From IMG/VR virus record IMGVR_UViG_3300025121_000011, positions 248,001 through 312,000 of that record: a DNA stretch of 64,000 nt. The stretch is one strand, 5' to 3'. The number at the start of each line of letters is the position of its first letter. Within the stretch, counting starts at the first letter, position 1. The position numbers were made by a program, and so were the translations under genes. The notes below the pieces were generated by a model, which searched no databases, was not told the DNA's origin, and saw only the letters and a program-made list of their open reading frames with translations. Shown here piece by piece: positions 18,478 to 54,578 of this stretch.

Positions 18478-19350
18478 ATGGCAATGATTTCCAAAGATGA
18501 AATGCTTGCGCGAGTAGTTGACCCTATTCTTGAGGCAATGAAAGAGGGAAAGCTGCTATGGCTTCAAGGATGGAATGTGGGTGCGGGTGCGGGTCTCCCT
18601 TATAACCCGACCAAAGCATCTAATAAGCAAGCGTATCGAGGTGCGGTCAATAACATCTTGATGTGGTTTGCGTCCGCTGCTAATGGTTGGGGCGACCCTC
18701 GTTGGATGGGTTTTGCTCAAGCGAAAACAAAAGGATGGCGAGTTCGGAAGGGGGAGGAGTCGACCCAAATCTATGCTCCAATCATGGGTTCGTATCCGAT
18801 TGAAGAGAACGGCCAAAAGGTTTGGAGAAAATATGTCAAGGGCTTCAACCCTGTTCATGTTTTCAATGCCCAACAGGTGGATGGAATCCCCGCGATTGAA
18901 AAGGCTGGAACCTTGGATGTCTCCACCGGATATGCTGCCGCAGAGGACATGTATAAGGCTATGAACGTGCAAACGATTCATGGCGGTAATGTGGCTGCAT
19001 ATGCATATCAGGTTGACATCATTAGGATGCCGGAACCAGAAATGTTTGTGGGCGCAGATGAATACCACGCTACGCGCTTGCATGAAATGGGGCATGCGAC
19101 GGGGCACCCGTCTCGCATGGATAGAAGGATGTTCGGAACAGGGTTACAGGATTACGCTCAGGAAGAGCTTGTAGCGGAGTTGTTTGCTGCTTTCGCATGT
19201 GCAGACATTGGCGTATCCAAAGCTGAAATGACGCAGAATCATGCAGCATACCTCAAAAGCTGGCATGAGCGTCTAAGCAGGGAACCAAAAGCATTCATAG
19301 ATGCCGTATCGGCAGCATGGGAAGCTTTTGAGTTTGTTCGAAAACTGTGA
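18478..19350 (+). CDS. ardC: ArdC-family antirestriction/ssDNA-binding protein with zincin-like domain
   Basis: LPYNP..YRG..N..WMGFAQAK..GWRVRKGE; YHATRLHEMGHATGHPSRMDR; YAQEELVAE. Confidence 0.9.
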   Translation: MAMISKDEMLARVVDPILEAMKEGKLLWLQGWNVGAGAGLPYNPTKASNKQAYRGAVNNILMWFASAANGWGDPRWMGFAQAKTKGWRVRKGEESTQIYAPIMGSYPIEENGQKVWRKYVKGFNPVHVFNAQQVDGIPAIEKAGTLDVSTGYAAAEDMYKAMNVQTIHGGNVAAYAYQVDIIRMPEPEMFVGADEYHATRLHEMGHATGHPSRMDRRMFGTGLQDYAQEELVAELFAAFACADIGVSKAEMTQNHAAYLKSWHERLSREPKAFIDAVSAAWEAFEFVRKL

Positions 19351-20250: not shown

Positions 20251-21120
20251 GTGTGGTGTTCAACAACAGAAACCTTTTTGAATATACTAAGGTGTGAAGA
20301 TTTAAGGATGGATAACCTCAATAGGAGTAACTCAATGTCCAGTTCGTCTTTCGTCACGCTTATGTCTGTTGTTATCGACCCCGCTGATCTACCTGCCCTT
20401 TTTACCGAGTTGGAGGACACTGCTGATCGTGTATGGTTGTCCCGGACCTGTGTTTGTGACCGATACACAATTAGGGGCGTGCCAGCAAGGAGGGTCGATG
20501 TTGTAATCGAGAACCGTTTGTCGACGACTAACCTTGCTGAGATTGATCCTTGCGAACGAATTGTAATGTCGGTCGTGGAAAAGGCCGGGCGCTTCGATGG
20601 TGCCATTCGTTGGCGTCTGACAGTTCGTGTCGTGCGTAGCATGGACCTTGTGATCCGCGGTGCCGATGGGTGCGTAATCAATCCGATTCCCGGTGGCCGT
20701 CTTGATGTTGAGTTGACATCAAATGGTAAGTATGGGAGTGTTCGCGTGACTCTATCTGACGGTACCGGCATTCGGTGGGATCAGAGTTTCGTTCGTCTTC
20801 GCTCTGACCTCGGTGATTACAGTCCTGCTCGGCTTGTGATGTGGCATGCCAGGAGATACTATGGTTTTCTTTTAGCCTCTGATGAGGGCTATCAGGAAGT
20901 GGTTGCCCTTGCTGATTCTTGGAAGATTCCAGGAGAGGCGTCCACACTTGCGGAAGCGAATCGGGCTGCATCTCGTGAACTGTACCGTCTTGCCCGTAAT
21001 GGTGGATGGCGAAAGCTTACACTTAGGGAACGGACAAAGCTCGGTCTTTATGGTGAGGCACAGTGGATTCCTGAGAAGATCTATGCCCGCGCGCAGATGG
21101 AACATCGGATGGTAAGATAG
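20251..21120 (+). CDS. hypothetical cassette protein (true start may be downstream)
   Basis: 289-aa ORF after dyad and header; hairpin downstream. Confidence 0.65.
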   Translation: MWCSTTETFLNILRCEDLRMDNLNRSNSMSSSSFVTLMSVVIDPADLPALFTELEDTADRVWLSRTCVCDRYTIRGVPARRVDVVIENRLSTTNLAEIDPCERIVMSVVEKAGRFDGAIRWRLTVRVVRSMDLVIRGADGCVINPIPGGRLDVELTSNGKYGSVRVTLSDGTGIRWDQSFVRLRSDLGDYSPARLVMWHARRYYGFLLASDEGYQEVVALADSWKIPGEASTLAEANRAASRELYRLARNGGWRKLTLRERTKLGLYGEAQWIPEKIYARAQMEHRMVR

Positions 21121-24453: not shown

Positions 24454-25308
24454 ATGAAAAAAATGCCTATTTCTCATATAACCTCAGAAGAGACCGCAGA
24501 AAATATACGAAGGATTTTCACGGATCGTGTTGGCAAGATTCGTGCATCTACTTCGGAACTCTGTGGGTTTGTCGACTCGCCCGCCAAAACAGCGAAGATG
24601 TTTGGATTCAATCTTGAAGATGATCGCATCTATAGCGATGACGAGTGGTATGACCTCTGTGATGTAATATTTTACGTCCGAGATATGACAGAGCTATTCA
24701 GGCGTACCACGGGCCTTCTCTCTGGTTGTAACTCTGATGCTGCATTGATGCTCTCTTTCTATGAGATCAGACTCCTGGCCAATATGCTGCGGTCTCCGAA
24801 AGTTGCACTGATGGTGCTGGCTTACATTTACAATGGAGCAATCAATCACGAACTTATGGCGATGTCCTATCTCACGGAGATTGGAAAGTGCGTAACCGGA
24901 ACCGTGGATTGTAAGGCCAACGCTTTCGCAGATGCGGCGTACCTCCTTGGGAACCATGCGGCTAAGCTTCTCGGGAGGAAGATGCCTGATCCGCTGGAGG
25001 GGCAGAGCCAGCAGAGCCACAGGTGGGCGAGTGTGGAAGAGATTCGTCAGTATGAAGATCGGATGCATGAGAAGTTTCTAAACATCACGCATTCTGCTCT
25101 CGAAAACCTCGTTGGTGTTAGCGGCCTAAAGGAAGGAGGACGCGTGTTCATCTTCAAGAGTAATGACTTGCCAGAGTTTTTGTGGGGGAAGAATGGTACA
25201 ATCCTTGGTAAAGATGGAGATGACAGTTATTGGATTACACTGGCTCATCCTGGTCCCCAGGGTGAGACTGAATGGCTGATAGATTATCATTACTTTAGAA
25301 CGCTGTGA
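24454..25308 (+). CDS. hypothetical cassette protein
   Basis: 284-aa ORF after dyad and header. Confidence 0.7.
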   Translation: MKKMPISHITSEETAENIRRIFTDRVGKIRASTSELCGFVDSPAKTAKMFGFNLEDDRIYSDDEWYDLCDVIFYVRDMTELFRRTTGLLSGCNSDAALMLSFYEIRLLANMLRSPKVALMVLAYIYNGAINHELMAMSYLTEIGKCVTGTVDCKANAFADAAYLLGNHAAKLLGRKMPDPLEGQSQQSHRWASVEEIRQYEDRMHEKFLNITHSALENLVGVSGLKEGGRVFIFKSNDLPEFLWGKNGTILGKDGDDSYWITLAHPGPQGETEWLIDYHYFRTL

Positions 25309-27644: not shown

Positions 27645-28590
27645 GGGCTGTGAGAGGAGCTAACTTGAAGGGCTAAAGAGTTTGTGGTGATGATAGTGTT
27701 AGTTGAGTTAACTTCTTTCACAGGACCTGGAGACTTCTCGGAAATATTTAAGATGGTATCATAACCGACTGGCAGGGAGCCGCACGGCAACAAAGGGCGT
27801 TCACCTTAGGGTGGGGGTCTGCCAAAATGATCAAGCCAAGCCTTGCAGGTAGGAGTGACCGGCGAAACTCCCGTAACCTGAGTAGGAGAATGGCAAGACG
27901 TGAGGGACATGCAGTCGACCCTTAGGGATACGATAATCCCCATTTTTTAACATCGTTACAAATAAGTGTTTATTGAGTTTCACCAGTATCTCGGATAAAG
28001 GCGATGTTAAAGTTAAAACTGGTACTTGTTCTTAGCGGATCCCCGGCTCCGCGTTTGCCCAGAGGAAAGCCGAGAGACGTATAGTTTCTAACGGGTAGGC
28101 AGCATCGCAAGAGTGCCTGATAAAAAGAGGTTATCGGTGGTTGGCTTAGAGGCAGCCATCCTTAATGAGTGAGACGATTGCCCCAAGGCGCAAAATGTCG
28201 GTAAGTGGTAACAGCTATGCCGATGATGTACCGGGGATAAACAGGGAAAGTGAAAGGCACCCCGTAACTGGTAAGGCCAATCTTCTCTTCAGCGTAATAG
28301 CACGCCGATATAATCTCTTTTAGGTAGGTCCACATGGAATAGCCAAGCGCTATGGGATCGAATATTATCGCATTTGGGAATGGTACTCTCCCGCTGGTTG
28401 TACCACCTTCTTAAGCGTCAGACATTTACAATGCATAATGCCGGTTAATTTTGCCGGTTAAAGTTGTGAATGTAGAAAACACTTGTATATATAAGAACAC
28501 AAGCAGTGACGTAAGTCTGTGATGATTCTATGCAGACACTCTATCATAAATTATAAAAGATGCGCAGCTTTAAAGCTGCGCATCTTCATT
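27645..28590 (+). ncRNA. large structured ncRNA containing a 23S rRNA GTPase-associated-centre-like domain
   Basis: About 940-nt ORF-free unit between a header (27594) and a terminator (about 28556-28586). Contains GGTTGGCTTAGAGGCAGCCATC (H43-like) and AGCGTAATAGC (H44 loop-like), closed by stem 28132-28139/28303-28310. Confidence 0.65.
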
Positions 28591-30223: not shown

Positions 30224-30308
30224 GGGGGCGTGGCGGAAAGGCAGACGCGTCAGACTTAAAATCTGGTGAGCTTAGCTCGTGTGGGTTCAAGTCCCACCGC
30301 CCCTACCA
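30224..30308 (+). tRNA. trnL: tRNA-Leu(TAA)
   Basis: Full cloverleaf with variable arm, anticodon loop CT-TAA-AA, GGTTCAAGTCC T-arm and encoded CCA. Confidence 0.95.
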
Positions 30309-30577: not shown

Positions 30578-30836
30578 ATTTACTTCAAAGCCTTCTTTAT
30601 AAAGTCTTCTTTATATAGATAACCGCTTAAGCGGTTATCTATATTTGCGTTTACATACTAATCGCAAAGCCCGGCGGCAAAAGATTTGCAGCATCTCTAA
30701 AAAAATATCTTCTATAGTAATACAGAGGTGTAACCAAGTCGGAGAAGTCCTCCCAATTACATTAATATTACGGTTACGGGGTTTGGAGTTTTTCACCTCA
30801 CGAAAGACCAACATTTTTCAAAGGAGGAATCAAATC

Positions 30837-31184
30837 ATGGATTCGGAACAGTTTGTCAAGGCAGGTGGTCGTTTTCTTCATTACCGAAGTTCTGCTCAAC
30901 GTAGAATTACGGTGGCATATCGAGTGGAAAATGGGAATATTCTCTATGGGGCGGAGATTCATCAACCAGATGGTCCGGATGATTGCTGGATAAGGAAACA
31001 GGCAAATTATCGAGCTTTGTATCGGCTGATTAGCCAGCCGGTGACTATTCCTGATGGGAATATGACAAATACCGAGAGGCATAGTTATATCCGAAGTGCT
31101 CTTATCAAGTTTGGGTGTTGCCAAAGAGAAGTTCTTTCTGTCAATAAAAATATCGCCGGGAAGGACTTGAAGAGAAGGGTTTGA
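30837..31184 (+). CDS. hypothetical cassette protein running into a CRISPR fragment
   Basis: AGGAGG RBS before ATG 30837; the last codons derive from repeat/spacer sequence. Confidence 0.6.
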   Translation: MDSEQFVKAGGRFLHYRSSAQRRITVAYRVENGNILYGAEIHQPDGPDDCWIRKQANYRALYRLISQPVTIPDGNMTNTERHSYIRSALIKFGCCQREVLSVNKNIAGKDLKRRV

Positions 31185-31342
31185 GGGATTTGAGATCAAG
31201 AGCTTCAATGGAGGGCCAAGTCTGCGGGGCTGTTTATGCTGCTTATGATAATGCTGCTGTTTATGGTAGCAAGCCCCTCTCGAACGGGGCCAAGTCTGCT
31301 GGTTCCTCAGATGATCTGATTATGCTGTTGAAAAGTAGCAAA
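31153..31342 (-). CRISPR. mosaic cas-less mini-array (type I-G-like fragment plus type III-like repeat)
   Basis: TCGCCGGGAAGGAC, 35-nt spacer, hybrid repeat, 37-nt spacer, 37-nt repeat GTAGCAAGCCCCTCTCGAACGGGGCCAAGTCTGCTGG (31266-31302), 32-nt spacer, GTAGCAA. Confidence 0.7.
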
Positions 31343-32033
31343 AAGCCATCGGTAGCCATGGAGGAGTTTGTTGGGTCAACCAATAGATGTCGATTCCGAA
31401 TCTGATGCAAGGCTCGTGTCCCGGATTTGCTTGCGGGAAAAGAGGTGGTGAATTGACCGTCTATGCGTTATTACGTGTGGCCCGTCAAACATTGGACCTC
31501 ATAGTTTGAGTGACGAACCTATTCTCAAACACACTTTACACCAGAAGAGAGTCATGCCTGGACGCAGGAAGATATACAGAACATAAAAGAATGGGCGCAA
31601 TTCTCATCCTTCTGGTGTCTTTTATTTTATAATTTAGTCTTCACTTAAGAGTATCATGCTTTTGTCCTTCTTGTTGATGCGCTGATGCCTGTATTAACTC
31701 TGATACTAGACTAATCTGTAGTTACTTATATCAATGTTAAGGCGGCAAAACTTTTGCACATGCAGGCACGAAAGCTGCTATATGCAAGAATCATGCCAAG
31801 GGTTGAGAGTATTGACGCGACAAGAATTCCTGGCGGCAAAAGCTTTACAGCAACTTTAAAAAAATATCCCCCGTAGTAACTAAGAGGTGCAGGGGCAAGG
31901 TTCCAGACTCCAGCCCGGTAGCCCCTGCCGACCGGGCGGCCAAAACGGCCTTCTAACTCTAAAAAAATATTCTATAGAGTAATATAAGGCCAGCCGCCTG
32001 AGCGGCAAATAACAACAAACAGAGAGGTGTGAG

Positions 32034-32636: not shown

Positions 32637-32689
32637 TCGATACGGATGTGATTGTGTGTGATTGGGAATTGAAAATGATTTAAGATTCA

Positions 32690-32782
32690 GTCTTTCCCGG
32701 CGATAAAAACCGGGAAAGACATCTCTGCTTCCTCAGATGATCGATTAAACTGCTTTCGGGACAAGCTTTCGGGTTTGTCCCG
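32690..32782 (-). CRISPR. solitary repeat-spacer unit (crRNA-like)
   Basis: Hairpin GTCTTTCCCGG-N9-CCGGGAAAGAC resembling the I-G-like repeat, followed by 27 nt identical to 47951-47977. Confidence 0.55.
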
Positions 32783-33157: not shown

Positions 33158-33233
33158 GGGACGTTAACTCAATTGGTAGAGTAGCGGACTTTTAATCCGT
33201 TTGTTTGGGGTTCGAGTCCCCAACGTCCCACCA
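33158..33233 (+). tRNA. trnK: tRNA-Lys(TTT)
   Basis: 76-nt cloverleaf, anticodon loop CT-TTT-AA, encoded CCA. Confidence 0.95.
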
Positions 33234-33342: not shown

Positions 33343-33413
33343 CCGGTGGTAGCTCAGCAAGGTTAGAGCGCTCAGACAACTGAGAAAACGCGGGTTCAAT
33401 TCCCGCCCCCGTA
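33343..33413 (+). ncRNA. tRNA-like element or pseudo-tRNA
   Basis: Canonical D-arm and T-arm, but the anticodon arm has a 4-nt loop, the acceptor stem is imperfect and there is no CCA. Confidence 0.5.
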
Positions 33414-35947: not shown

Positions 35948-36210
35948 CAAATTGCAACGCTGATGTGTGCGAGCTATTTCCAGCAGACTTGATTAAGGCA
36001 CAACGCATCGGATTTGCCGATCTCCAGGTTGGAGATTTGATCTTATCCTTTACTGATGATTATAAGCCAGCGTGGAATGAGGTTACGTTTGTTTCTCGCA
36101 AATACGAATTAATGCGCGTGTATTGGAGCGTAGACAACGGTGAGCGATATATGTGTTGGGGTGATACTCCAATATACATCAAAAAGAAACTAAAACAGGA
36201 GGTTGCATGA
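35920..36210 (+). CDS. hypothetical protein (paralog of 36535-36834)
   Basis: FN..ADVCE..RIxFAxLxxGDLILSxxDDxxPA shared between the two. Confidence 0.65.
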   Translation: MDEPYVFNLTNCNADVCELFPADLIKAQRIGFADLQVGDLILSFTDDYKPAWNEVTFVSRKYELMRVYWSVDNGERYMCWGDTPIYIKKKLKQEVA

Positions 36211-36226
36211 GTCATTATATGAGTTA

Positions 36227-36512
36227 GTATTAATGGGGCCCGGCTTCTGTCGCCGGGAAGGACGAAGTATCCGAAGGATTTACGACCGAGAAAAGCTGTT
36301 GCTTCAATGGGGCCCGGCTTCTGTCGCCGGGAAGGACTTGAAGAGAAGGGTCCGAAGGATTTGAGACCAGGAGCTTCAATAGAGGGCCTAAGTCTGCAAG
36401 GAACACATCTTTAATCTTATTATATCTCTGCTTCCATAGGTTAGCGAGTCCCTTCCGATAAGGAAGGGACTCTGTCTATCTTCAACAGGGGACTTCTGCT
36501 GCCGGGAAGAAA
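36227..36512 (-). CRISPR. cas-less CRISPR mini-array, type I-G(I-U)-like repeats plus a type III-like unit
   Basis: 37-nt repeats at 36227-36263 and 36301-36337 (minus strand GTCCTTCCCGGCGACAGAAGCCGGGCCCCATTGAAGC). Spacers of 37, 35 and 39 nt, a hybrid repeat at 36373-36400, a hairpin repeat at 36440-36476 and a degenerate repeat at about 36479-36512. Confidence 0.85.
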
Positions 36513-36534
36513 TAAGAATAGGAGGTTGTAAGTT

Positions 36535-36834
36535 ATGAGTCACTATTGGAGGTTTAACTCTCAGGATTCTCATGCAGATGTGTGTGAAGATTATGGAGTA
36601 GAACAACTTGGAGTAACACGCATTCGATTTGCCTATCTTAAATTTGGAGATCTAATTCTGTCTATTGATGACGATAATAGACCTGCTTATAACTTAGTGG
36701 TTTATGTTTTACTAAAGGAAGACAAGGTAATTTGGGAAGTAGAAGGTGTTCGATATATATCTTCAAAAGAAAGCGCGGTGTATGTAGACAGCGCAGTGCA
36801 TGTTAAAAATCGAGAAGCAGAAACAAACGGCTGA
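36535..36834 (+). CDS. hypothetical protein (paralog of 35920-36210)
   Basis: GGAGG RBS; shared motifs. Confidence 0.7.
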   Translation: MSHYWRFNSQDSHADVCEDYGVEQLGVTRIRFAYLKFGDLILSIDDDNRPAYNLVVYVLLKEDKVIWEVEGVRYISSKESAVYVDSAVHVKNREAETNG

Positions 36835-46203: not shown

Positions 46204-46572
46204 TTGATTATGCATTACGTGTTATGGATTGATGATGAACCAGCCAGATATAATCTTCTTTGTGGGGATTTTTCTGATACACTTTTTATCTTTGCATGTG
46301 GTGTAAAGCAAATCAATCATTATCTTAATCATGCAAAAATTAAATGGGATTTGATTTTATTGGACCATGATATGGGAAGTGCCATTAATGGGATGGAGGT
46401 TTGTAAAAAATTTTTGGGAGAAAGAGGATTTAGAGTTGCTTGTGTTAGTAATAATACACCAAGGCGATTGGATATGATTGCTTATTTAAAAGAGTATGCC
46501 GTTCCGGTATATGACATTTCAGTAACTGATACGAATTTTTCTGCAAAAATAATTCAATTGTTAACCTTATAA
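46204..46572 (+). CDS. cyclic-phosphate-processing receiver-domain protein
   Basis: VLWIDDEPAR..WDLILLDHDMG..SNN stand-alone receiver pattern. Confidence 0.65.
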   Translation: MIMHYVLWIDDEPARYNLLCGDFSDTLFIFACGVKQINHYLNHAKIKWDLILLDHDMGSAINGMEVCKKFLGERGFRVACVSNNTPRRLDMIAYLKEYAVPVYDISVTDTNFSAKIIQLLTL

Positions 46573-46644
46573 TATATGAGATGCTATAGGAACAAACGCA
46601 CTCAATTCTCAGGATATTTATAAGGTTCTATTTAAAAAAGAATA

Positions 46645-46878
46645 ATGGAGGGAGTGATGGATCTTAAAGTTAAAACTATTCATGCAAAGAGTTTGATTTA
46701 CGGTGCTGCGTTTAAGGCTATGTATTGGACGTTAGGAAAAGAAGATGAGATTACGCGATATACATTAGAGGTTTATCGCAAAACTCGTAGGCAAATTCCG
46801 GGTTGGAAAGATCCTAAGACTGGCCGGTCTACACGTTACGGTGCTAATGAGGCATATGAATCTACTCGAAAAGATTAA
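46645..46878 (+). CDS. hypothetical protein
   Basis: ORF in operon. Confidence 0.5.
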   Translation: MEGVMDLKVKTIHAKSLIYGAAFKAMYWTLGKEDEITRYTLEVYRKTRRQIPGWKDPKTGRSTRYGANEAYESTRKD

Positions 46879-47242
46879 AATGAATTATAAGAAAGCAATT
46901 ATATGTTTACCGGAAGAGCATATTGTGCTTCGTGACGTATCAGTAAAATCAACTGAAATTGAAGGGTTGATTATGATAACCGGGCAGAGGAAAATTGTAG
47001 CAGAAGAAAGGTTGGCGAGTAAATTTCAAATCAAAGTAGAAGTGCAAAGATCTAAGTGGTCAATATGGCGGCTGTTTGGATTTCAGACTTATTTTAAGTA
47101 TGAAATAAATTTGCCAAGTGATTGGAATGCAAAATATAGTTGTTATGTTGATGATTATATTTGCATCAGATATGAATATATTACAAAAAGCTACATCGTA
47201 TCTATATATTCTACACAGATTTTCTTTGAAGAAGTTGTCTAA
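46841..47242 (+). CDS. hypothetical protein
   Basis: ORF in operon. Confidence 0.55.
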   Translation: MLMRHMNLLEKIKMNYKKAIICLPEEHIVLRDVSVKSTEIEGLIMITGQRKIVAEERLASKFQIKVEVQRSKWSIWRLFGFQTYFKYEINLPSDWNAKYSCYVDDYICIRYEYITKSYIVSIYSTQIFFEEVV

Positions 47243-47540
47243 GTTTTACCTATTCCAACTGAATTGCGAGAGCGAAAAAGAGTGGATTGATTTTTATTAT
47301 GGTTTATCAGTCCTCCTTCATATTTAGTTATATAATTGCTTATACGGTTGTTTTAGATGTTTTGTCTATATTTAAATAGCAATATACAAAAGATATACGT
47401 CTAAGAAAAGTTTGAATTAAGTAAAAATATTTAGATAGCGATAAAATTCAGTATCTGTTGAGTTTGTTAGAGAAATTTATACACAAATTGATGAAGTTAA
47501 TATCATTGGGTATTATTCTTCTTATGATGTTATTCATGTT

Positions 47541-47607
47541 GATGTTAACCGATGAACAGAAGAAATCGGTGATATATAATATGGATGCAATTGGAGGTTG
47601 GAAATGA
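47541..47607 (+). pseudogene. 3' remnant of a fourth copy of the Imm5-like tandem gene
   Basis: GATGTTAACCGATGAACAGAAGAAA...ATGGATG..ATTGG..TTGGAAATGA matches the 3' ends of copies 1 and 2. Confidence 0.7.
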
Positions 47608-48104
47608 TCTCATCAAGAGATTTGATTCTTTTTATTAATCCTCCAAAATATTTATCCGTATTGATTGCTTATACAGTTGCCGCAGATGTTCTGCCTATAT
47701 TTGAAAAGCATTTTCCGAAGGATTTGAGACCGAGAAAAGCTGTTGAAGCGTCTAAGATGTATTTGGATGGATATGCGGTTGATGCTGCTGCTTATGTTGA
47801 TGCTCCTTCTGCTCATTATGCTCCTTCTGCTCATTATGCTGCTGTTGCTGTTAATGCTGCTGATGCTTATGCTGCTGCTAATGCTGCTGCTAATGCTGTT
47901 TATTTTACGGCCAAAGATTCTTCCGAAGAACACATCTTTAACCTAATTTTATCTCTGCTTCCTCAGATGATCGATTATGCTGTTGAAAATCAAGTTAAGT
48001 TATTCACCGGGTCTGGAGACTTCTCAGAAATATTTGAGATGTTAACCGATGAACAGAAGAAGCTGGTGATATACAATATGGATGTAATTGGGAATTGGAA
48101 ATGA
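47604..48104 (+). CDS. Imm5-like Ala/Tyr-rich protein, copy 1
   Basis: AADVLPIFEKHFPKDLRPRKAVEASKMYL plus Ala-rich variable core; ATGA-coupled tandem. Confidence 0.7.
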   Translation: MISSRDLILFINPPKYLSVLIAYTVAADVLPIFEKHFPKDLRPRKAVEASKMYLDGYAVDAAAYVDAPSAHYAPSAHYAAVAVNAADAYAAANAAANAVYFTAKDSSEEHIFNLILSLLPQMIDYAVENQVKLFTGSGDFSEIFEMLTDEQKKLVIYNMDVIGNWK

Positions 48105-48658
48105 TTTCATCAAAAGATTTGGTTTTATTCATTAATCCTCCTAAATATTTATCCGTATTGATTGCTTATACAGTTGCCGCAGATGTTCTGCCTATATTTG
48201 AAAAGCATTTTCCGAAGGATTTGAGACCGAGAAAAGCTGTTGAAGCGTCTAAGATGTATTTGGATGGATATGCGGTTGATTCTGCTACCGCTGTTAATGC
48301 TGCTAATGCTGCTGCTAATGCTGCTTATGCTGCTGTTAATACTGCTGCTAATGCTGCTGCTAATGCTGCTGCTTATGCTGCTGCTTATGCTGCTGCTTAT
48401 GCTGTTTATTATGTTGATGCTACTGATGTTGCTGCTAATGCTGCTTATGCTGCTTGTTATGCAGCCAAAGCCTCTTCCGAAGAACACATCTTTAATCTTA
48501 TTCTATCTCTGCTTCCTCAGATGATCAATTATGCTGTTGAAAATCAAATCAAGTTGTTCACCGGACCTGGAGATTTCTCAGAGATATTTGAGATGTTAAC
48601 CGATGAACAGAAGAAGCTGGTGATATACAATATGGATGTAATTGGGAATTGGAAATGA
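48101..48658 (+). CDS. Imm5-like Ala/Tyr-rich protein, copy 2
   Basis: Near-identical flanks to copy 1, longer variable core. Confidence 0.7.
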   Translation: MISSKDLVLFINPPKYLSVLIAYTVAADVLPIFEKHFPKDLRPRKAVEASKMYLDGYAVDSATAVNAANAAANAAYAAVNTAANAAANAAAYAAAYAAAYAVYYVDATDVAANAAYAACYAAKASSEEHIFNLILSLLPQMINYAVENQIKLFTGPGDFSEIFEMLTDEQKKLVIYNMDVIGNWK

Positions 48659-49164
48659 TTTCATCAAAAGATTTGGTTTTATTCATTAATCCTCCTAAAT
48701 ATTTATCTGTATTGATTGCTTATACAGTTGCCGCAGATGTTCTGCCTATATTTGAAGAGAAGTATCCGAAGGATTTAAGACCGAGAAAAGCTGTTGAAGT
48801 TGCTAAGATGTATTTGGAAGGATATGCTGCTGATGCTTATGATGCTGCTATTTATTATGTTACTGATGCTGCTTATGCTATTGATGCCACTGTTTATGCT
48901 GCTAATGCTGCTTATTATGCTGCTTATGCTGCTTATGCTGTTACTTATAATTCTGATGCTGCCTATGCCGCTTATTATGCAGCTAAAGCTTCTTCCGAAG
49001 AACACATCTTCAACCTGATTTTATCTCTGCTTCCTCAGATGATCAATTATGCTGTTGAAAATCAAATTAAGTTATTCACAGGACCCGGAGATTTCTCAGG
49101 AATATTTGAGATGTTAACCGATGAACAGAAGAAGCTGGTGATATTCAATATGGATGTAATTTAA
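48655..49164 (+). CDS. Imm5-like Ala/Tyr-rich protein, copy 3
   Basis: Near-identical flanks, distinct variable core. Confidence 0.7.
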   Translation: MISSKDLVLFINPPKYLSVLIAYTVAADVLPIFEEKYPKDLRPRKAVEVAKMYLEGYAADAYDAAIYYVTDAAYAIDATVYAANAAYYAAYAAYAVTYNSDAAYAAYYAAKASSEEHIFNLILSLLPQMINYAVENQIKLFTGPGDFSGIFEMLTDEQKKLVIFNMDVI

Positions 49165-49194
49165 ACAATAATCTGAACAATAGAGGATAATGAT

Positions 49195-50160
49195 ATGAAG
49201 CTTGAAGAAATTGGTTTTTATAGTTTGCACGATGAGCGAGCCAAAAATACTTCGTCCTCTTCTCCTATGCAACGATGCGAAGTTTTAATTACGGAGGATT
49301 GCAATTTTAGTTGTCCTTATTGCAAGATGAAGAAGAATAGTTCTTATCTTTCTTTTGAAGATGCAAAAACCCTTATTGATTATTGGGCAGATGATGGATT
49401 AGTTAATATTCGATTCTCCGGAGGAGAGCCGACTATGAATCCGTATCTTTATCAGATGGTAGAATATGCTAAGAGTCGCGAGATTAAACGGATAGCTATT
49501 TCTACCAATGGCTCCATGGTAACCGAGGTTTATCACGATCTGGTTCAAGCGGGAGTAAATGACTTCTCTATTTCACTTGATGCTTGTTGTGCATCTGATG
49601 GAGATATTATGGCAGGTGGTGTTGAGGGCTCTTTTAATAGGGTGATTGAAAATATCAAATATTTGTCAGCAAGAACATATGTTACGGTAGGAGTTGTTAT
49701 TACTCATGAGAATGTTTCTAATGTGGCGAATATTGTTCGTTTTGCTCATGAACTTGGAGTTGCGGATATTCGCTTGATTTCTGCTGCACAATATAATGTT
49801 CTTTTAAAAGGAGTAGAGGATATCGATCCACAGATACTTGAGGCTCACCCGATTCTTAAGTATCGAGTTAATAATATTTTAGCCGGCCATAATGTGCGCG
49901 GTATGAAAGATTGTGATTCTCATACTTGTTATTTAATTCAGGACGATTCTGTGGTAGTTAATGGGAAGCATTATCCTTGTGTTATTCATATGAGGGAAAG
50001 TGGTAAACCAATTGGAAAGATTGGACCAAATATGCGACAGGAAAGAATTGCTTGGATGAAAAATCATGATCCTCATGATGACCCGATATGCAGATCGAAT
50101 TGCTTGGATATTTGTATTCTATACTCTAATAAGGTAAGATCATTTCACAAGGACATTTAA
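49195..50160 (+). CDS. radical SAM protein
   Basis: CNFSCPYC cluster motif, FSGGEPT, ISTNG, SISLD. Confidence 0.9.
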   Translation: MKLEEIGFYSLHDERAKNTSSSSPMQRCEVLITEDCNFSCPYCKMKKNSSYLSFEDAKTLIDYWADDGLVNIRFSGGEPTMNPYLYQMVEYAKSREIKRIAISTNGSMVTEVYHDLVQAGVNDFSISLDACCASDGDIMAGGVEGSFNRVIENIKYLSARTYVTVGVVITHENVSNVANIVRFAHELGVADIRLISAAQYNVLLKGVEDIDPQILEAHPILKYRVNNILAGHNVRGMKDCDSHTCYLIQDDSVVVNGKHYPCVIHMRESGKPIGKIGPNMRQERIAWMKNHDPHDDPICRSNCLDICILYSNKVRSFHKDI

Positions 50161-50197
50161 ACTAGTTAAACATAAAAACTAAAAATATGAGGTAATA

Positions 50198-51286
50198 ATG
50201 CGATTTATTCATTTTCCAAAAATTGGTCAATTCAAGGATGCTATTCATTCGATTCGTCAACGAGGCGCTTATGTAGGTAGAGATGTTAATGGCGATATTA
50301 TTTATGATAGTTCTATTTTGATGCCAAAAATTACATTCATTGGTTCTGTTAAAATGCATGGTACTAATTCTGCTGTATCTTTTCATCGTATGGAAGGAGT
50401 GAGGCAGGCTCAATCTAGGAATAAGATTTTATCTATAGAATCAGATAACAATGGATTTTGTAGATTTACAGAGTCTATTCCCGAAGATGTTTGGGATTTT
50501 CTTTTTAATTCTCTATTATCTCCACTAATTACTGAGCCATATCTTTTTGGACGAGTAACGGTTTTTGGAGAATGGATTGGTCCCGGTGTTCAGGGTGGTG
50601 AAATTGGTATTAAATATCTTCCGAATAAAATCTTTGTAGTGTTCGGAGTATATGTTGGGGAGCGTGATGAATTAGAAGATAAAACTCCCACCGGATACTT
50701 TGTTCCTCTTTGTGATATTCCATCTTTCAATGATGAATCTTATCATCTGAATGATAATAGAATTTATTTAATTACTGATTTAGCTCCAACTTTCAAAATA
50801 GAAGTCGATTGTAATTATCCAGAAATTTCTAGGAATAAGTTGGTCGAATTAACTATGCAAGTTGAAGCTAAGTGCCCAGTCGCCAATTACTTTGGAATTG
50901 AAGGAACGGGAGAGGGCATCGTATGGTGCTCAATTACGGAAGGGTGGATGGGTCCAGATTTTTGGTTTAAGACCAAGGGAGAAAAGCATTCCGCTTCAAA
51001 GATAAAAAAGATAGCCGAAGTAGATGTAACAAAGGTAGAGGGAGTAATTGCGTTTTTAGAAGAGACTCTAACTGAAGTTAGATTGAATCAAGCTTTGGAA
51101 TACTTAAAAGAAAAAGAGATGCCTATCGATCGAAGTAGCACAGGCGAGTTTGTTCGGTGGATGATCAATGACGTTACTACTGAAGAGGCTATAATGATGG
51201 AAGCCTCAGGACTTACAGTAAAAGAAGTTGGTCCCAAATTAGGCACAGCCGCCAGGCAGTGGTTTTTTAATCAACTTAATAAGTAG
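50198..51286 (+). CDS. RNA ligase, Rnl2-like family
   Basis: VKMHGTN motif I, FGEWIG, FVVFGV, GEGIVW, FKTKGEKH. Confidence 0.85.
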   Translation: MRFIHFPKIGQFKDAIHSIRQRGAYVGRDVNGDIIYDSSILMPKITFIGSVKMHGTNSAVSFHRMEGVRQAQSRNKILSIESDNNGFCRFTESIPEDVWDFLFNSLLSPLITEPYLFGRVTVFGEWIGPGVQGGEIGIKYLPNKIFVVFGVYVGERDELEDKTPTGYFVPLCDIPSFNDESYHLNDNRIYLITDLAPTFKIEVDCNYPEISRNKLVELTMQVEAKCPVANYFGIEGTGEGIVWCSITEGWMGPDFWFKTKGEKHSASKIKKIAEVDVTKVEGVIAFLEETLTEVRLNQALEYLKEKEMPIDRSSTGEFVRWMINDVTTEEAIMMEASGLTVKEVGPKLGTAARQWFFNQLNK

Positions 51287-51289
51287 GAG

Positions 51290-51535
51290 ATGTCCATGTC
51301 TTTTACATTTGTTAATGTACTTTTCATTCTCTTTATTTATATGATAGTTTTTGGTTATCCACTTCGTGGTATAATTTTATTATTTTTATGGATAATAGAT
51401 TGTTTTCCAGAAACAAAACATGATCGTTTGTTAATAATTTCTTCATGTATACTTCCAGTATTTGGAGAGTGTGTGGTTCTTTGGTTCTTAATTAAGCAAA
51501 TGATTAAGTGGATAAAGGAGGGAAAAGGTGATTAA
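51290..51535 (+). CDS. small membrane protein
   Basis: Two hydrophobic helices. Confidence 0.55.
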   Translation: MSMSFTFVNVLFILFIYMIVFGYPLRGIILLFLWIIDCFPETKHDRLLIISSCILPVFGECVVLWFLIKQMIKWIKEGKGD

Positions 51536-51854
51536 AATTAACGGTAAAACATTTTTTACAACTAATATTTCAAATGTTTCTATTCGTAATAATGAAATAT
51601 ATATCGACGGAAAGTTGGTAGGCGATAGTAAAGATGCAGAACAGGGTATTCTTACTGTCAAGATTGAGGGTAATTTGGTTAGCTTAATTTGTGATGCAAC
51701 AGTAGAAGTAACAGGCAATGTAAATGGTAGCATTAGCGCTGGTAACTCTGTTTACTGTGGTAATGTTAATGGAAATGTTAATTGTGGAAATTCTGCTCAT
51801 TGTAATAATATTGAAGGCAATGTAACTGCTGGAAATTCGGTTCATAAATTATAA
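51528..51854 (+). CDS. beta-repeat (G-N-V-x-G) protein
   Basis: VTGNVNGSISAGNSVYCGNVNGNVNCGNS repeats. Confidence 0.6.
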   Translation: MIKINGKTFFTTNISNVSIRNNEIYIDGKLVGDSKDAEQGILTVKIEGNLVSLICDATVEVTGNVNGSISAGNSVYCGNVNGNVNCGNSAHCNNIEGNVTAGNSVHKL

Positions 51855-52149
51855 AGAATTGATTCTTGTAATAAAATTTATGTAGTCGAAAAGATTATTA
51901 TCTTAGAAAAAAAAGTATCAAGATAATGTATCGATATAAAGCCACGGGATTGCTTTGATTTAGCGTAAGGATGGCGGACTCAGGTCCGCTATTTGGCGCA
52001 TTGGTTGTCATGGATTAATAGAGGTGATAATTGTATAATAAAAGTTTTATTGATCTTAGTAAAGATAAGTCAATGAATTGTAGCTAAGGTTTTATTATTT
52101 TGATTCGAAAATCGATTGTTCAATACTCAGGATAGAAAGGGAAATAATA

Positions 52150-53511
52150 ATGATTATACGATTTACATCGACCAATCCAAACGCACTTGATATTCTTAAA
52201 AAGAATCCAGAAAGTTTTTCAGGTATTCAATTGAGAAGTCATAAAAATGGTGTGGCTATAGGTAGGATTATTTCCGCAAAGATTCCTATTGAATATCATA
52301 TGATCTTTCAAGATACTAAATATAGTTACTCTCAGGATTCCTCTAATCAGATTGATTTTCAAAGTTATTGCAATCCTCGTGCAGCACTTGGTTTAATTGG
52401 AGAGTTACTCCGGCACGTATTAGTATCAGATCAAGATTGGCGGGATACAGATATTCCATGGCTTAACTCTACAATTGGAGAAGTTGATACAAGAGACTTT
52501 AACCACACTATTATAGTAGATAATTTATATGCAGATGGTTTTAACTTAGATGGAGGGCTGGTTTTAGAAAAGTATTTTAAGGAGATTTCTCTAAAAAGAA
52601 ATGGTCAGAATCAGTTTGAGCTAAAGATAGATGTCTGTCGAGATACAATACATTATACCATTAATTTATTGGCTTTTGTATGTATGTATTTGGCGGCAAC
52701 TAATAAACAGCCTTGGTATCTTAACCGAGATATAGCATCAAAATACATTAGAGTTTTAGAAAATATTGGTGACGTGCCATATTTTATTTTATATCTTTTT
52801 GCCCGTTCCTGTCTTCCATCGGAAGAATTATTTAATGAATTCGCTCCTCGATTGGAGAATATTTTTTACAGCTATGATGATCGAGCAAATGATCTAACTA
52901 TGGTATATGGAAATACTCAATCAATGAGATTGCGAAGTATTTCTGATTTGCTTTTAACTAATGATAAAATTTTTTCTAACATTATAGAAATTGGTTGTGG
53001 CGATGGAGATTATCCTCGCCGATTAGCAAAGAAGTTGAATAATGGATTAAGTTGGTGGTCATATGATATTGAAGATCATAGTTATCTTAATCGTAAAATT
53101 CCAGAAATGATGGGAAAATTAGCAACATTTAAATTTACTCAAGAGTGGGATCAAATTCCTTTATTGGATAACCCTATAGTATTGTTAGTAGAAGTAATTG
53201 AGCATATGTCGGTTGAAGAAGCGATAGAATTAATCTGTCGAATTTTAGATAAGCACTCTCCGACACAATTAATTATTACTACTCCAAATAGGACATTTAA
53301 TAATTATTATCGGTTTGATCCCGAAGATGATGGATTTAGACACAGCGATCACAATTTTGAAATGACTCAGGAGCAATTTAAAGAATATATTCTTAGTATC
53401 ATTAAATTGCTCCCATATGATGCATCCTTTTTCGGAATTGGTGATCGAATTGATGCAGATTATACTACTCAAGGAGTGGTATTAACTCGTAAAGATCCTG
53501 GGTCAAGCTAA
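52150..53511 (+). CDS. hen1: Hen1-like 3'-terminal RNA 2'-O-methyltransferase
   Basis: N-terminal ILKKNP Hen1-L-type region; IIEIGCGDG, EVIEHM, IITTPN and FRHSDHNFE motifs. Confidence 0.85.
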   Translation: MIIRFTSTNPNALDILKKNPESFSGIQLRSHKNGVAIGRIISAKIPIEYHMIFQDTKYSYSQDSSNQIDFQSYCNPRAALGLIGELLRHVLVSDQDWRDTDIPWLNSTIGEVDTRDFNHTIIVDNLYADGFNLDGGLVLEKYFKEISLKRNGQNQFELKIDVCRDTIHYTINLLAFVCMYLAATNKQPWYLNRDIASKYIRVLENIGDVPYFILYLFARSCLPSEELFNEFAPRLENIFYSYDDRANDLTMVYGNTQSMRLRSISDLLLTNDKIFSNIIEIGCGDGDYPRRLAKKLNNGLSWWSYDIEDHSYLNRKIPEMMGKLATFKFTQEWDQIPLLDNPIVLLVEVIEHMSVEEAIELICRILDKHSPTQLIITTPNRTFNNYYRFDPEDDGFRHSDHNFEMTQEQFKEYILSIIKLLPYDASFFGIGDRIDADYTTQGVVLTRKDPGSS

Positions 53512-53969
53512 TGTGGGGCATTAGTCGTAAAGATTCTAGCCCATGTAATGTAGTACCACCACTTTTTATTAAATATTTAGATTATTTAGTGAGAGATGGA
53601 CAATTATATTATATGAAGAGAAATTCTATAAGTCCATCTGTAATGATTCCAGATTCAGCTTACAGTTGGGGCTGGGATAATGCCGGGAATTATGGATTTG
53701 TTTGGCGCGGACCTAATGCCTATGAAGGGAATTTGCCATCCGATTTAGCTGGAATATTTCCACTGTGGGATATAATTTGGTCTTTTGCTTATCGTTATGA
53801 AAGACATCTTGTAGCAGAACAGAATTGGAATGCAACTCAAAGAGAATACTTTTATATCCTTCCTGATAGATTTTTGGAATTAGAAGAAATAAGAGAGTTA
53901 TGCGAACAAAATCTTTGGGTTGAGGCCGCTTCTTTATATGAGGTTAAGAAAAAAATATGGTGCGATTAA
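53511..53969 (+). CDS. hypothetical protein
   Basis: Coupled ORF. Confidence 0.6.
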   Translation: MWGISRKDSSPCNVVPPLFIKYLDYLVRDGQLYYMKRNSISPSVMIPDSAYSWGWDNAGNYGFVWRGPNAYEGNLPSDLAGIFPLWDIIWSFAYRYERHLVAEQNWNATQREYFYILPDRFLELEEIRELCEQNLWVEAASLYEVKKKIWCD

Positions 53970-54157
53970 CTTTGAAATTTCCAAATATTACTGCTGATAT
54001 TTTAGAGGAAAAGTTAAAGGATGCTGTTGAAAAATTTACATTATCCGCAGAGTATTCTGATGGCGAAGTAATCATTATTGGATCAAAAGAGGCAATTCAT
54101 ATAATTCAAAAGGCATATAAAATACAACAGATGCTTTCATCTATGACAGTCAATTAG
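53957..54157 (+). CDS. hypothetical protein
   Basis: Coupled ORF. Confidence 0.5.
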   Translation: MVRLTLKFPNITADILEEKLKDAVEKFTLSAEYSDGEVIIIGSKEAIHIIQKAYKIQQMLSSMTVN

Positions 54158-54167
54158 TGAGGCTTGC

Positions 54168-54578
54168 ATGTCTGATTATGAGTTTGAATCAAATAGTTTG
54201 TTAAATGCTCTTCAACACATTGATTGGGATAAGTTAGTTCTTAATAAAAATTCAGGTATGGCACGTTTGCTTACTGGAAGAGATGATTCTATTCCACTTA
54301 ATAAAATACAAGTGAAGATTGTGTATTCAGATTATAATCCGGTTGGATGGGCTTGGGTTTTTCCATATATTGATTATGATGGCCGTCGGCGCCTCGGATT
54401 TATGATTTTTATTCAAAGAGAATATCGTCGCAAAGGCTTGGGATCTAAATTGTTAGATTGGGGTCGAAACATTGCACGTCAAAAGCACATTAAATTTATT
54501 GTATATCCATGGGATAAAAAAGGACATTTGTTTTTTGAATCAGCCGGAATAACAAGTAGAAACAAAGGGGACTGGTAA
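54168..54578 (+). CDS. GNAT-family acetyltransferase
   Basis: FIQREYRRKGLGSKLL acetyl-CoA-binding motif A. Confidence 0.8.
   Translation: MSDYEFESNSLLNALQHIDWDKLVLNKNSGMARLLTGRDDSIPLNKIQVKIVYSDYNPVGWAWVFPYIDYDGRRRLGFMIFIQREYRRKGLGSKLLDWGRNIARQKHIKFIVYPWDKKGHLFFESAGITSRNKGDW

Follow-up and report, generated by a model that had tools for sequence, protein, structure and literature searches.

Does a huge phage carry a guide array joined from two CRISPR repeat families, and if so, at what would it be aimed? The question is raised by the locus at 31153-31342 of the window (the whole 64,000-nucleotide stretch of DNA analysed here), which belongs to a 335-kb groundwater phage. The earlier note had read this locus as a chimera of two CRISPR repeat families. 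The analysis revealed short CRISPR-like arrays, cas-free and with two kinds of repeat (A and B), at this place and at 36.3 kb (Table 1). The elements that had been described are all present in the layout given for them: a 14-nt piece of repeat A, spacer Z, an A/B hybrid, spacer Y, the full repeat B, spacer X and a 7-nt start of B. The 14 nt (TCGCCGGGAAGGAC) match the end of the 36.3-kb repeat exactly, and the spacer after them differs from the one at 36338-36372 at exactly the five positions claimed. The hybrid junction GCTTCAATGGAGGGCCAAGTCTGC recurs with one substitution and one inserted base, followed there by a different spacer. The Ala/Tyr-rich spacer (31229-31265) translates as AVYAAYDNAAVY, and the full 37-nt repeat GTAGCAAGCCCCTCTCGAACGGGGCCAAGTCTGCTGG is found in one copy. 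The 32-nt spacer after it equals 47959-47989 plus a T inserted at spacer base 15, and GTAGCAA closes the locus.

Table 1. Coordinates, in the window, of the array elements, of related fragments and of the Imm5-like genes.
Feature	Position	Strand	Description
Orphan Imm5-like fragment	27717-27755	+	39 nt; FTGPGDFSEIFEM segment; neither A nor B repeat alongside
Truncated repeat A	31153-31166	-	minus-strand GTCCTTCCCGGCGA, the first 14 nt of A; hairpin-free
Spacer Z	31167-31201	-	35 nt; paralog of sp2, 5 differences; Imm5-like codons FEEKYPKDLRPR, best 27/35
Hybrid H1	31202-31225	-	minus strand: GCAGACTTGGCCC (5' part of B) then TCCATTGAAGC (3' handle of A)
Spacer Y	31226-31265	-	37-40 nt; Ala/Tyr-rich variable Imm5-like region (AVYAAYDNAAVY); best own-copy match 31/37
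Repeat B, sole full copy	31266-31302	-	minus-strand CCAGCAGACTTGGCCCCGTTCGAGAGGGGCTTGCTAC; 6-bp GC stem, 8-nt loop; conserved core ends at 31299
Spacer X	31303-31334	-	32-35 nt; Imm5-like LLPQMI(D/N)YAVEN segment with extra T at spacer base 15 (window 31317)
Remnant of B	31335-31341	-	7 nt, GTAGCAA; minus strand TTGCTAC, the handle end of B; hairpin-free
Third locus	32661-32747		21-nt gene 3'-end fragment (32661-32681), A-derived palindrome GTCTTTCCCGGCGATAAAAACCGGGAAAGAC (32690-32720), 27-nt fragment (32721-32747)
Repeat A', full-length	36227-36263	-	handle end decayed, ATTAATAC instead of ATTGAAGC; 3 mismatches, all in the first 5 plus-strand nt
Spacer sp1	36264-36300	-	37 nt; 36/37 to paralog P3 (48759-48795) and one other copy
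Repeat A, reference copy	36301-36337	-	minus-strand GTCCTTCCCGGCGACAGAAGCCGGGCCCCATTGAAGC; 6-bp stem, 7-nt loop, 12-nt 3' tail
Spacer sp2	36338-36372	-	35 nt; protospacer overlaps that of sp1 with a 7-nt shift; at least 5 mismatches to every copy
Hybrid H2, paralog of H1	36373-36397	-	unstructured, folding energy -0.1 kcal/mol
Spacer sp3	36398-36439	-	gene-matching core 36401-36435; 34/35 to P2 and four other copies
Element C	36440-36479		GTTAGCGAG, 11-bp hairpin, then TGTCTAT; -22 kcal/mol, z = -5.9
Element A*, decayed copy of A	36480-36513	-	a deletion removed one stem arm; adjoins C with no intervening spacer
Tandem Imm5-like paralogs	47604-49164	+	P1 47604-48104, P2 48101-48658, P3 48655-49164; Pfam PF21805

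At the array loci, gene-derived pieces of 32-40 nt alternate with repeat elements unrelated to the Imm5-like genes. The block of A piece, spacer and hybrid at 31153-31225 is duplicated at 36324-36397, and the alignment that had been proposed for the two gave 90.5% identity over 74 columns by BLAST, with the homology ending precisely at the block limits. When the arrays are read on the minus strand, each of the six spacers is preceded by the handle of one repeat type and followed by the 5' part of the same type; X, Y and sp3 have B-type flanks, while Z, sp2 and sp1 have A-type flanks. The changeover from B to A occurs at a single point, which is the hybrid. The expected count of the 37-mers A and B in shuffles of the window had a mean of 0.00, which excludes chance.

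Repeat A is CRISPR-like solely on the minus strand (GTCC...CCCCATTGAAGC), where its form is that of a class 1 CRISPR repeat, that is GTC..., a stem-loop and then ...ATTGAAGC. The comparison with Rfam CRISPR-DR16 (RF01330) gave 17.6 bits on the minus strand only, with E = 0.21 over 4227 families. The repeat is a look-alike of CRISPR-DR16 and not a demonstrated member, because this score is well below the gathering score of 35. The alignment covers all 37 model positions, with GU..UUCC, a CGG/CCG stem and then GCC.CAUUGAA.C, and the consensus matched is GUaUuCCGgG..CcCGGCCUCAUUGAAaC. The copies A and A' agree at 34 of 37 positions and lie 74 nt apart, so that a direct repeat with at least two copies, a length within ~23-50 nt and regular spacing is present. 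Outside the unused handle the two are identical at 32/32 nt. The decay of the handle end of A' is the pattern expected for a terminal repeat in the minus-strand reading. The 14-nt piece of A at 31153-31166, which overlaps the 3' end of ORF 30645-31184, is identical to 36250-36263 and 36324-36337.

The status of repeat B is different. Apart from the full copy, B is represented by two 13-nt 3' pieces in the hybrids, one 7-nt 5' piece and element C, and is not a multi-copy repeat in this genome. B and the two hybrids agree up to ...GTCTGC, which favours a 34-nt B (31266-31299), with spacers Y and X ~3 nt longer leftward. No Rfam CRISPR-DR family matched B even at E<=10. No array with B was found in GTDB genomes, IMG/VR, JGI metagenomes, plasmids or GenBank phages, where only short chance matches at single places were obtained. 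To our knowledge, its end TTGCTAC is not among the common crRNA tags. Element C shares only its ends with B (GTAGCAAG...GTCTGC); read on the plus strand, its hairpin is also predicted as an intrinsic terminator. The chimera described in the earlier note thus holds in so far as two unrelated repeat-like elements are joined start to end at two loci and the pieces between them behave as discrete spacers. As to two CRISPR families, A resembles CRISPR-DR16 (minus strand, sub-threshold), and B, with its single full copy, the missing Rfam match and no array in any searched collection, has no independent support as a CRISPR repeat and less still as a type III one. The labels I-G-like and type III-like, and the two host systems, are thus putative.

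The hybrids did not bear out the idea that units had been stitched together on purpose. H1 is unstructured with a folding energy of -1.4 kcal/mol, H2 is likewise hairpin-free, and alignment placed the crossover at a GGCCC(C) motif common to A and B. A recombination scar fits these features better, and by sequence the hybrids look like scars at the shared GGCCC motif and not like a designed adaptor.

All array spacers, together with three additional fragments, are discrete sense-strand pieces (21-40 nt) of the tandem Imm5-like gene family. The counterparts of all spacers within the window are P1-P3, next to which a decayed fourth copy lies at ~47300-47600; the phage holds at least 11 copies, and the target is not a single paralog. 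The spacers matched the family at E values of ~1e-5 down to 1e-14, except Z (27/35) and the low-complexity Y. The similarity of the repeats to the same family was at chance level in a shuffle test (p = 0.25-1.0), and the boundaries were sharp. With spacers of 32-40 nt and repeats unrelated to the source gene, the pieces are arranged as CRISPR spacers are. They cluster on two conserved segments bordering the variable Ala/Tyr region, with one within it. All nine fragments are in sense orientation (9/9), hence crRNAs read from the minus strand would be antisense to the Imm5-like mRNAs.

Two other readings of these gene fragments were rejected. A decayed, internally deleted Imm5-like gene had been suggested by an alignment by eye of B and the hybrids with the AAKASSEE segment; shuffles gave p = 0.25-1.0 for each repeat element. 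A translated locus was considered for the 86-codon open frame across the 31.2-kb array, where Z and Y are in the gene frame; X and sp3, however, do not keep to this frame, and its counterpart at 36.3 kb is closed by a stop codon.

Each array spacer carries at least one base difference from every known copy (16-17 copies), and each has a difference that occurs in none of them. The extra T of spacer X is missing from all 16 known copies and is left out in the collapsed gene contigs. The single, synonymous difference of sp1 (AGA to CGA) is missing from all 17 copies, and the one difference of sp3 is found in none of 16. The synonymous spacer differences are AGA to CGA, TTA to TTG and CCG to CCA, and from such changes some of the differences look inherited from a coding homolog. 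The duplicated spacers Z and sp2 have drifted 14% apart, mainly by non-synonymous changes. Apart from the arrays themselves, exact targets for the cores of sp1, sp3 and Y were found neither in IMG/VR nor in the rest of the 335-kb contig. As the earlier note said, the Ala/Tyr spacer lacks an exact counterpart in the window, and for its 28-nt core this extends to the rest of the contig and to IMG/VR. A perfectly matching target phage was likewise missing from IMG/VR and from the related contigs L007 and L009. The read depth of the spacers (~527x against ~30x for the phage, run X1) had raised the possibility of an abundant rival phage. This depth was not counted as evidence because it comes mostly from the phage's own collapsed multi-copy Imm5-like genes.

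The sequence next to the protospacers is regular. Directly after both A-type protospacers, all 17 copies have NAA on the plus strand, which is TTC or TTT in the minus reading, against a background of 0.076 per site. The two well-defined B-type protospacers both have TCA after them. The flanks are, judged from these bases, PAM-like. At the third locus, the 27-nt fragment at 32721-32747 is identical to 9 gene copies.

The genomic context was then considered. No match to cas or defence genes was obtained for 28 ORFs of the window, each compared with one to three of PHROGs, Pfam and PADLOC, and nothing recognisable as Cas was seen in the large ORFs without annotation at 1.8-8 kb. Across the 335-kb contig, neither A nor B has an additional copy. 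Host arrays with A were not found in GTDB species genomes or IMG/VR (loop-degenerate patterns, exact outside the loop) or in plasmids; the loop-degenerate patterns of A and B matched this phage only, apart from a hairpin (L022) attributed to chance. When the repeats and whole arrays were compared by BLAST with plasmids and GenBank phages, all matches were chance ones. As no array with A or B is present in the searched collections, no cognate Cas system is known; this absence is weak evidence, because the patterns required an exact match outside the loop. The gene adjacent to the array (30645-31181) had no homolog on other viral contigs, and the 28-40 kb region had no megablast match among GenBank phages.

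As regards a leader and transcription, the two loci have no flanking sequence in common, and neither a sigma-70-like nor a phage-type promoter was found on the minus strand. The missing leader does not exclude the mini-array class, because phage mini-arrays are reported to be leaderless (Medvedeva et al. 2019, PMC6858448). The plus strand holds every gene and, in the 10-35 kb region, all 30 copies of a phage promoter-like motif, and the 36.3-kb array borders coding sequence on both sides. No RNA run containing the locus was listed, and one metatranscriptome searched with the stretch gave only contigs with tRNAs of other organisms. Across at least 8 assemblies, which are 99.8-100% identical, the arrays do not differ and hence show no spacer turnover.

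From these results, the loci are tentatively explained as eroded, composite, virus-borne mini-CRISPR arrays (no cas, no leader) aimed at the Imm5-like genes of related phages, an explanation regarded as possible rather than probable. Phage-against-phage targeting fits the data, and the function of the arrays is putative. The spacers may have come from the Imm5-like genes of a close relative, through a PAM-aware adaptation machinery or through recombination with host arrays. Minus-strand transcripts would be cut by a Cas6-type nuclease of the host wherever a hairpin is intact (A, B and perhaps C), and host effectors would take up the crRNAs so produced. These effectors would attack the multi-copy Imm5-like clusters of a related co-infecting phage, or their mRNAs, leading to superinfection exclusion. 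Since none of the phage's own copies is identical to any spacer, they are proposed to escape in part. The hybrid would most likely be a recombination scar that was later duplicated to the second locus. As it is hairpin-free, Z and sp2 probably never gain a processed 5' handle, and only sp1, Y and perhaps sp3 are inferred to have a canonical processing context.

Some observations weigh against functioning arrays. Type I and type III systems tolerate mismatches, such as one outside the seed. A single non-seed mismatch (sp1, sp3) or the perfect 27-nt match (32721-32747) would normally still be self-targeted. The lack of a cognate repeat array, of a perfect target and of a minus-strand promoter, the unstructured hybrids and the absence of turnover were also counted on this side.

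The main rival is that the locus is a non-functional relic whose pieces, from one or two arrays, were captured or assembled by recombination, fused at microhomology, duplicated and left to decay neutrally, with nothing processed today. This is unlikely, and still a serious alternative. The many truncated or degenerate parts (the 14-nt A stub, the 7-nt B stub, A*, A' and the hairpin-free hybrids) agree with it, as do the 14% drift of the duplicated Z and sp2, mostly non-synonymous, the frameshifting 1-nt insertion in spacer X and the orphan fragments at 27717-27755 and 32661-32747 without proper repeats. Leader, promoter, cas gene and host array were all not found and spacer turnover was not seen, as a relic would have it. 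However, neutral decay does not sit well with the 32/32 identity of A and A' outside the unused handle, with the three identical 14-nt copies of A, or with a handle-side flank that is intact for 6/6 spacers even where the remaining repeat is lost. Moreover, neutral capture of a host array leaves unexplained the restriction to one gene family (~2% of the genome) in one orientation (9/9). A further alternative is that the locus has nothing to do with CRISPR and is a mosaic of gene fragments and terminator-like or REP-like hairpins, produced by illegitimate recombination among Imm5-like copies. The lack of support for B in the databases, the terminator score of C and the orphan fragments without repeats speak for such a mosaic, and in the 31.2-kb array the fragment order follows the gene order and Z and Y retain the gene reading frame. 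The colinearity and the shared frame would, however, each arise by chance at 1/6 to 1/3, and the mosaic does not account for the full-length match of A to a curated CRISPR repeat consensus on one strand only, for the sharp boundaries between gene-derived and unrelated sequence, or for the PAM-like flanks. Spacers of 35-40 nt, repeats of 34-37 nt and regular spacing are also typical of CRISPR arrays, and this alternative is considered improbable.

Two other explanations accept the guide-like form and assign it another role. The spacers might give guide or antisense RNAs directed at the phage itself that, alone or together with host Cas proteins, dampen its Imm5-like genes (at least 11) or provoke breaks that reshuffle the variable cassettes. 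The near-identity of spacers to own copies (36/37, 34/35 and 27/27), their position on two conserved segments around the variable Ala/Tyr region with one inside, and the uniform strand bias are in line with this, and both hosts and phages are known to have regulatory crRNA-like RNAs whose repeats are degenerate (bioRxiv 10.1101/2024.10.29.618823). Those RNAs, however, use short partial complementarity to host cas or toxin promoters and not to phage coding regions, near-full matches would recruit nucleases, and minus-strand transcription is without evidence; the chance of this reading is judged to be low. Equally doubtful is a bolder idea, in which a huge phage holds composite guide cassettes for two CRISPR effector types, all aimed at the conserved flanks of a hypervariable Imm5-like family, that would destroy a rival's gene set or break the phage's own copies to reshuffle variable cassettes. 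In the other explanation, the plus strand is the active one, and sense fragments joined to crRNA-tag complements (GCTTCAAT for A, GTAGCAA for B) act as target mimics. Co-transcribed with the flanking genes, they would bind host type III or type VI complexes carrying spacers against the Imm5-like mRNA, without activation. The plus-strand direction of genes and promoter-like motifs is as this proposal would have it, and the 36.3-kb array lies at an operon end just upstream of a plus-strand terminator-like hairpin. The 7-8 nt anti-tag is the one feature retained after every fragment, also where the repeat is otherwise gone, and near-identity to own genes is what mimicry needs. Against this, the literature search found no precedent, the decoy must outcompete abundant real mRNAs, and the conserved repeat sequence on the other flank of the spacers is unexplained. 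The strategy would also be inefficient, because any complex still binding the real target would fire; target mimicry is held to be very improbable.

If the arrays work as putative mini-CRISPR arrays against related phages, a huge phage would be borrowing host CRISPR machinery against close relatives via one multi-copy gene family. The Imm5-like product resembles an immunity or anti-defence protein, and the family would then be a focus of inter-phage conflict. It would also follow that guide units of different repeat types can recombine within one array, and the idea of virus-against-virus mini-arrays would be extended from small archaeal viruses to groundwater huge phages. If the loci are relics, they would be a record of phages acquiring, fusing and duplicating array pieces through repeat microhomology.

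Among known systems, the closest comparison is with the cas-free mini-arrays of the Sulfolobus portogloboviruses SPV1 and SPV2 and of phages and prophages, whose spacers match close relatives while the carrier's own locus has point mutations or deletions, and for which superinfection exclusion has been proposed in the archaeal viruses (Medvedeva et al. 2019, PMC6858448). As in these, there are 1-3 intergenic spacers, no cas genes and, as in phage mini-arrays, no leader, and the spacers match a gene of the own viral lineage from which the carrier copies differ by point changes or an indel. Unlike in these, the repeats here are tied to no host array found, two repeat types are joined by a hybrid within one array, and all spacers match one family with at least 11 copies in the carrier itself. 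Self-avoidance here is often one mismatch only, and neither a reciprocal partner virus nor spacer turnover was seen. The Racrs are RNA anti-CRISPRs made of solitary repeat units, for which a meaningful spacer is unnecessary (Camara-Wilpert et al. 2023, PMC10651486), and the Cracrs are viral regulatory crRNA-like RNAs whose spacers pair with host cas or toxin promoters (bioRxiv 10.1101/2024.10.29.618823). The present loci are like both in being phage-encoded, cas-free repeat mimics, many of them degenerate or cut short and some arranged in short arrays. They differ from both in their spacers, which are full-length copies of phage Imm5-like coding sequence and not of the Racr or Cracr kind. Cracr arrays reportedly always combine variants of a single CRISPR type (bioRxiv 10.1101/2024.10.29.618823), whereas this locus joins two unrelated repeats.

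Two different repeat elements, A and B, are combined in the chimeric 31.2-kb locus, and one of them resembles a CRISPR repeat. The earlier note had described it as a chimera of two CRISPR repeat families; the two repeat elements, and the gene pieces acting as spacers, were borne out, but only A is CRISPR-like. The note's type III label for B and its two host systems are conjectural, as is any function of the locus today. Its layout of this locus was in exact agreement with the sequence. The 36.3-kb locus is also present, but had been drawn too simply, as it additionally holds element C, an 11-bp hairpin with B-like ends, and A*, a degraded A copy that forms its last element. The two loci have only a block of 74 columns in common (90.5% identity), made up of the 14-nt A piece, one spacer and the A/B hybrid. 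A ribosome-binding site (RBS) and start codons are duplicated around the 36.3-kb array, which points to insertion of the array at the 5' end of a gene.

Features of the array loci, their spacers and the surrounding window
Feature	Position	Description
31.2-kb locus	31153-31342	14-nt A piece, spacer Z, hybrid H1 (24 nt), spacer Y, sole full B copy, spacer X, first 7 nt of B
36.3-kb locus		A', sp1, A, sp2, hybrid H2, sp3, element C, A*
Third locus	32661-32747	A-derived palindrome between two further gene fragments
Orphan gene fragment	27717-27755	
Spacer sp1		Best match to any known copy 36/37
Spacer sp3		Best match to any known copy 34/35
Spacer X		Carries one extra base relative to its best match among the known copies
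Spacer sp2		Best match to any known copy has 5 or more mismatches
Spacer Z		Best match to any known copy has 8 mismatches
Imm5-like genes	47604-49164	Three tandem paralogs; decayed AT-rich copy upstream (47300-47600)
Duplicated RBS and first codons (AGGAGGTTG...ATGAGTCAYTAT)	36195-36222 and 36519-36546	Both sides of the 36.3-kb array; upstream copy is a stub, MSHYMS then stop
Anti-restriction ORF	18478-19350	Match to PHROG family phrog_7245 (E = 3e-63)
ORFs sized like the anti-restriction ORF	20251-21120, 24454-25308	No Pfam match
tRNA set	30224-30308, 33158-33233, 33343-33413	tRNA-Leu(TAA), tRNA-Lys(TTT) and a weaker third match (Rfam 36 bits, no ARAGORN call), between the array loci
Long stretches without convincing ORF	27760-28500, 31343-31830	Former GC-rich; nothing credible in Rfam search
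RNA repair/modification cluster	46204-55804 and 61355-62530	Adjoins Imm5-like genes; cREC_REC receiver domain, radical SAM protein, RNA ligase, Hen1 N-terminal domain, PNKP-type ligase domain; ATP-dependent DNA ligase farther along

Read on the minus strand, repeat A (GTCCTTCCCGGCGACAGAAGCCGGGCCCCATTGAAGC) folds into a 6-bp stem with a 12-nt tail, and its entire length aligned with the Rfam CRISPR-DR16 consensus, but it scored 17.6 bits where the threshold is 35 (E = 0.21 in the search of all 4227 families). In A', the decayed A copy that comes last in this reading, decay is confined to the unused end carrying the handle (the repeat 3' end); such decay is usual in terminal repeats. Repeat A is credibly CRISPR-like. 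Repeat B gave no match in the Rfam search and is repeat-like through its arrangement only: three spacers have B-type flanks in common, bordered by ...AAGTCTGC at one end and by G(T)TAGC(A/G)A at the opposite end. The flanks followed one rule for six of six spacers: whichever repeat type supplies the handle beside a spacer also supplies the 5' part at its other end. Searches with loop positions left free found no arrays with A or B in 185,579 GTDB species genomes, IMG/VR, plasmids or GenBank phages, and none with B in JGI metagenomes; the only carriers found were this phage and its identical copies from other samples.

Each hybrid, on the minus strand, fuses the 5' part of B (GCAGACTTGGCCC) to the A handle (CCATTGAAGC) within GGCCC(C), a motif present in both repeats. 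The most plausible origin of this fusion is recombination between two arrays, followed by copying to a second locus. Both hybrids were unstructured (-1.4 and -0.1 kcal/mol), so that a hairpin-dependent Cas6 could not cut there and spacers Z and sp2 would therefore be without a processed 5' end.

All the spacers are pieces of a single gene family, identified by Pfam as Imm5-like putative immunity proteins (PF21805, with the curated cut-off passed by two of three paralogs). Four clusters contain the phage's copies, at least 11 in total; two of these clusters sit at the contig ends, and versions about 70% identical occur on two small contigs from another sample. Start and stop codons of the tandem genes overlap (ATGA) at 47300-49164 and on contigs L006, L008 and L010. 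The central Ala/Tyr/Asn region is hypervariable; the spacers derive from two conserved segments on either side of it, with Y coming from within, and all nine gene fragments are in sense orientation. The repeat elements resembled the gene family no better than chance in shuffle tests (p = 0.25-1.0), which marks the loci as genuine mosaics whose parts are sharply bounded. Decayed Imm5-like gene copies are thereby ruled out, and local duplication of gene fragments, the alternative named in the earlier note, is excluded as the whole story.

Both A-type protospacers are followed by GAA or AAA in 17 of 17 copies, which in minus orientation is TTC/TTT, a PAM of the TTN kind (background 0.076 per site), and TCA follows both well-defined B-type protospacers. 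Several differences between spacers and genes are synonymous, pointing to a spacer source in a diverged coding homolog; these differences and the PAM-like flanks are hints, at the sequence level, of true spacer acquisition. Every array spacer shows one or more differences not present in any of the 16-17 available copies, and the sp1, sp3 and Y cores had no other occurrence in the contig or IMG/VR.

The source contig, IMGVR_UViG_3300025121_000011, is viral, from groundwater, and 335,169 bp long, and the window spans its positions 248,001-312,000; the window contains phage hallmarks, among them RNA ligase, DNA ligase and anti-restriction protein, and nearly every gene is encoded by the plus strand. 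GC content shifts abruptly across positions 1-64000 (about 30-34% at 1-10 kb, 43-48% at 10-34 kb and 33-40% from 34 kb on), and GC skew is positive nearly throughout except in the first 2 kb. The two long stretches lacking a convincing ORF could be novel RNAs or decayed genes. The promoter-like motif TCTAAAAANATAT occurred 30 times against 1.8 expected, at 10384-34591 and on the plus strand only, mostly preceded by GGCGGCAAAA and 30-60 nt upstream of a small ORF; it probably represents a phage-specific promoter preceded by what is left of a terminator. A further motif, TGGCAY-N5-TTGCW, had 24 matches against 0.15 expected (11526-31798) and belongs to an inverted repeat roughly 35 bp long (TGGCA..TTGCATTAAGCAA..TGCCA). 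The matches resemble sigma-54 promoters, but about half of them are opposite-strand ones arising from the inverted repeat, which looks more like a dimeric-regulator operator ahead of many small genes.

The loci are tentatively interpreted as mini-CRISPR arrays of the virus-borne kind, eroded and composite, that would target Imm5-like genes in related phages, a reading given somewhat less than an even chance. Its main rival is a non-functional relic, which is considered rather unlikely. No cas or defence genes were detected among the tested ORFs of the window, and the arrays were identical across eight independent assemblies and hence show no spacer turnover. A mosaic unrelated to CRISPR is improbable beside the CRISPR-like features of repeat A, and self-regulation of the phage's own genes is equally so. 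Least probable is target mimicry from the plus strand. Hairpin C resembles a plus-strand terminator and lies where the operon containing the 36.3-kb array ends. A search for a minus-strand promoter for the arrays found none, and no RNA run containing the locus was listed, so the minus-strand crRNA orientation is read from repeat shape only.

For the preferred reading as mini-arrays against related phages, a single mid-spacer mismatch normally gives no protection from type I or type III interference, nor does a perfect 27-nt match to gene copies such as that at 32721-32747, and this weakens the fit to known virus-borne mini-arrays. The fit is also weakened as no rival phage with a perfect spacer match was found. 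For virus-borne mini-arrays, mutation of the corresponding locus in the carrier itself has been reported (PMC6858448), and the present phage is alike in that its own copies differ from every array spacer.
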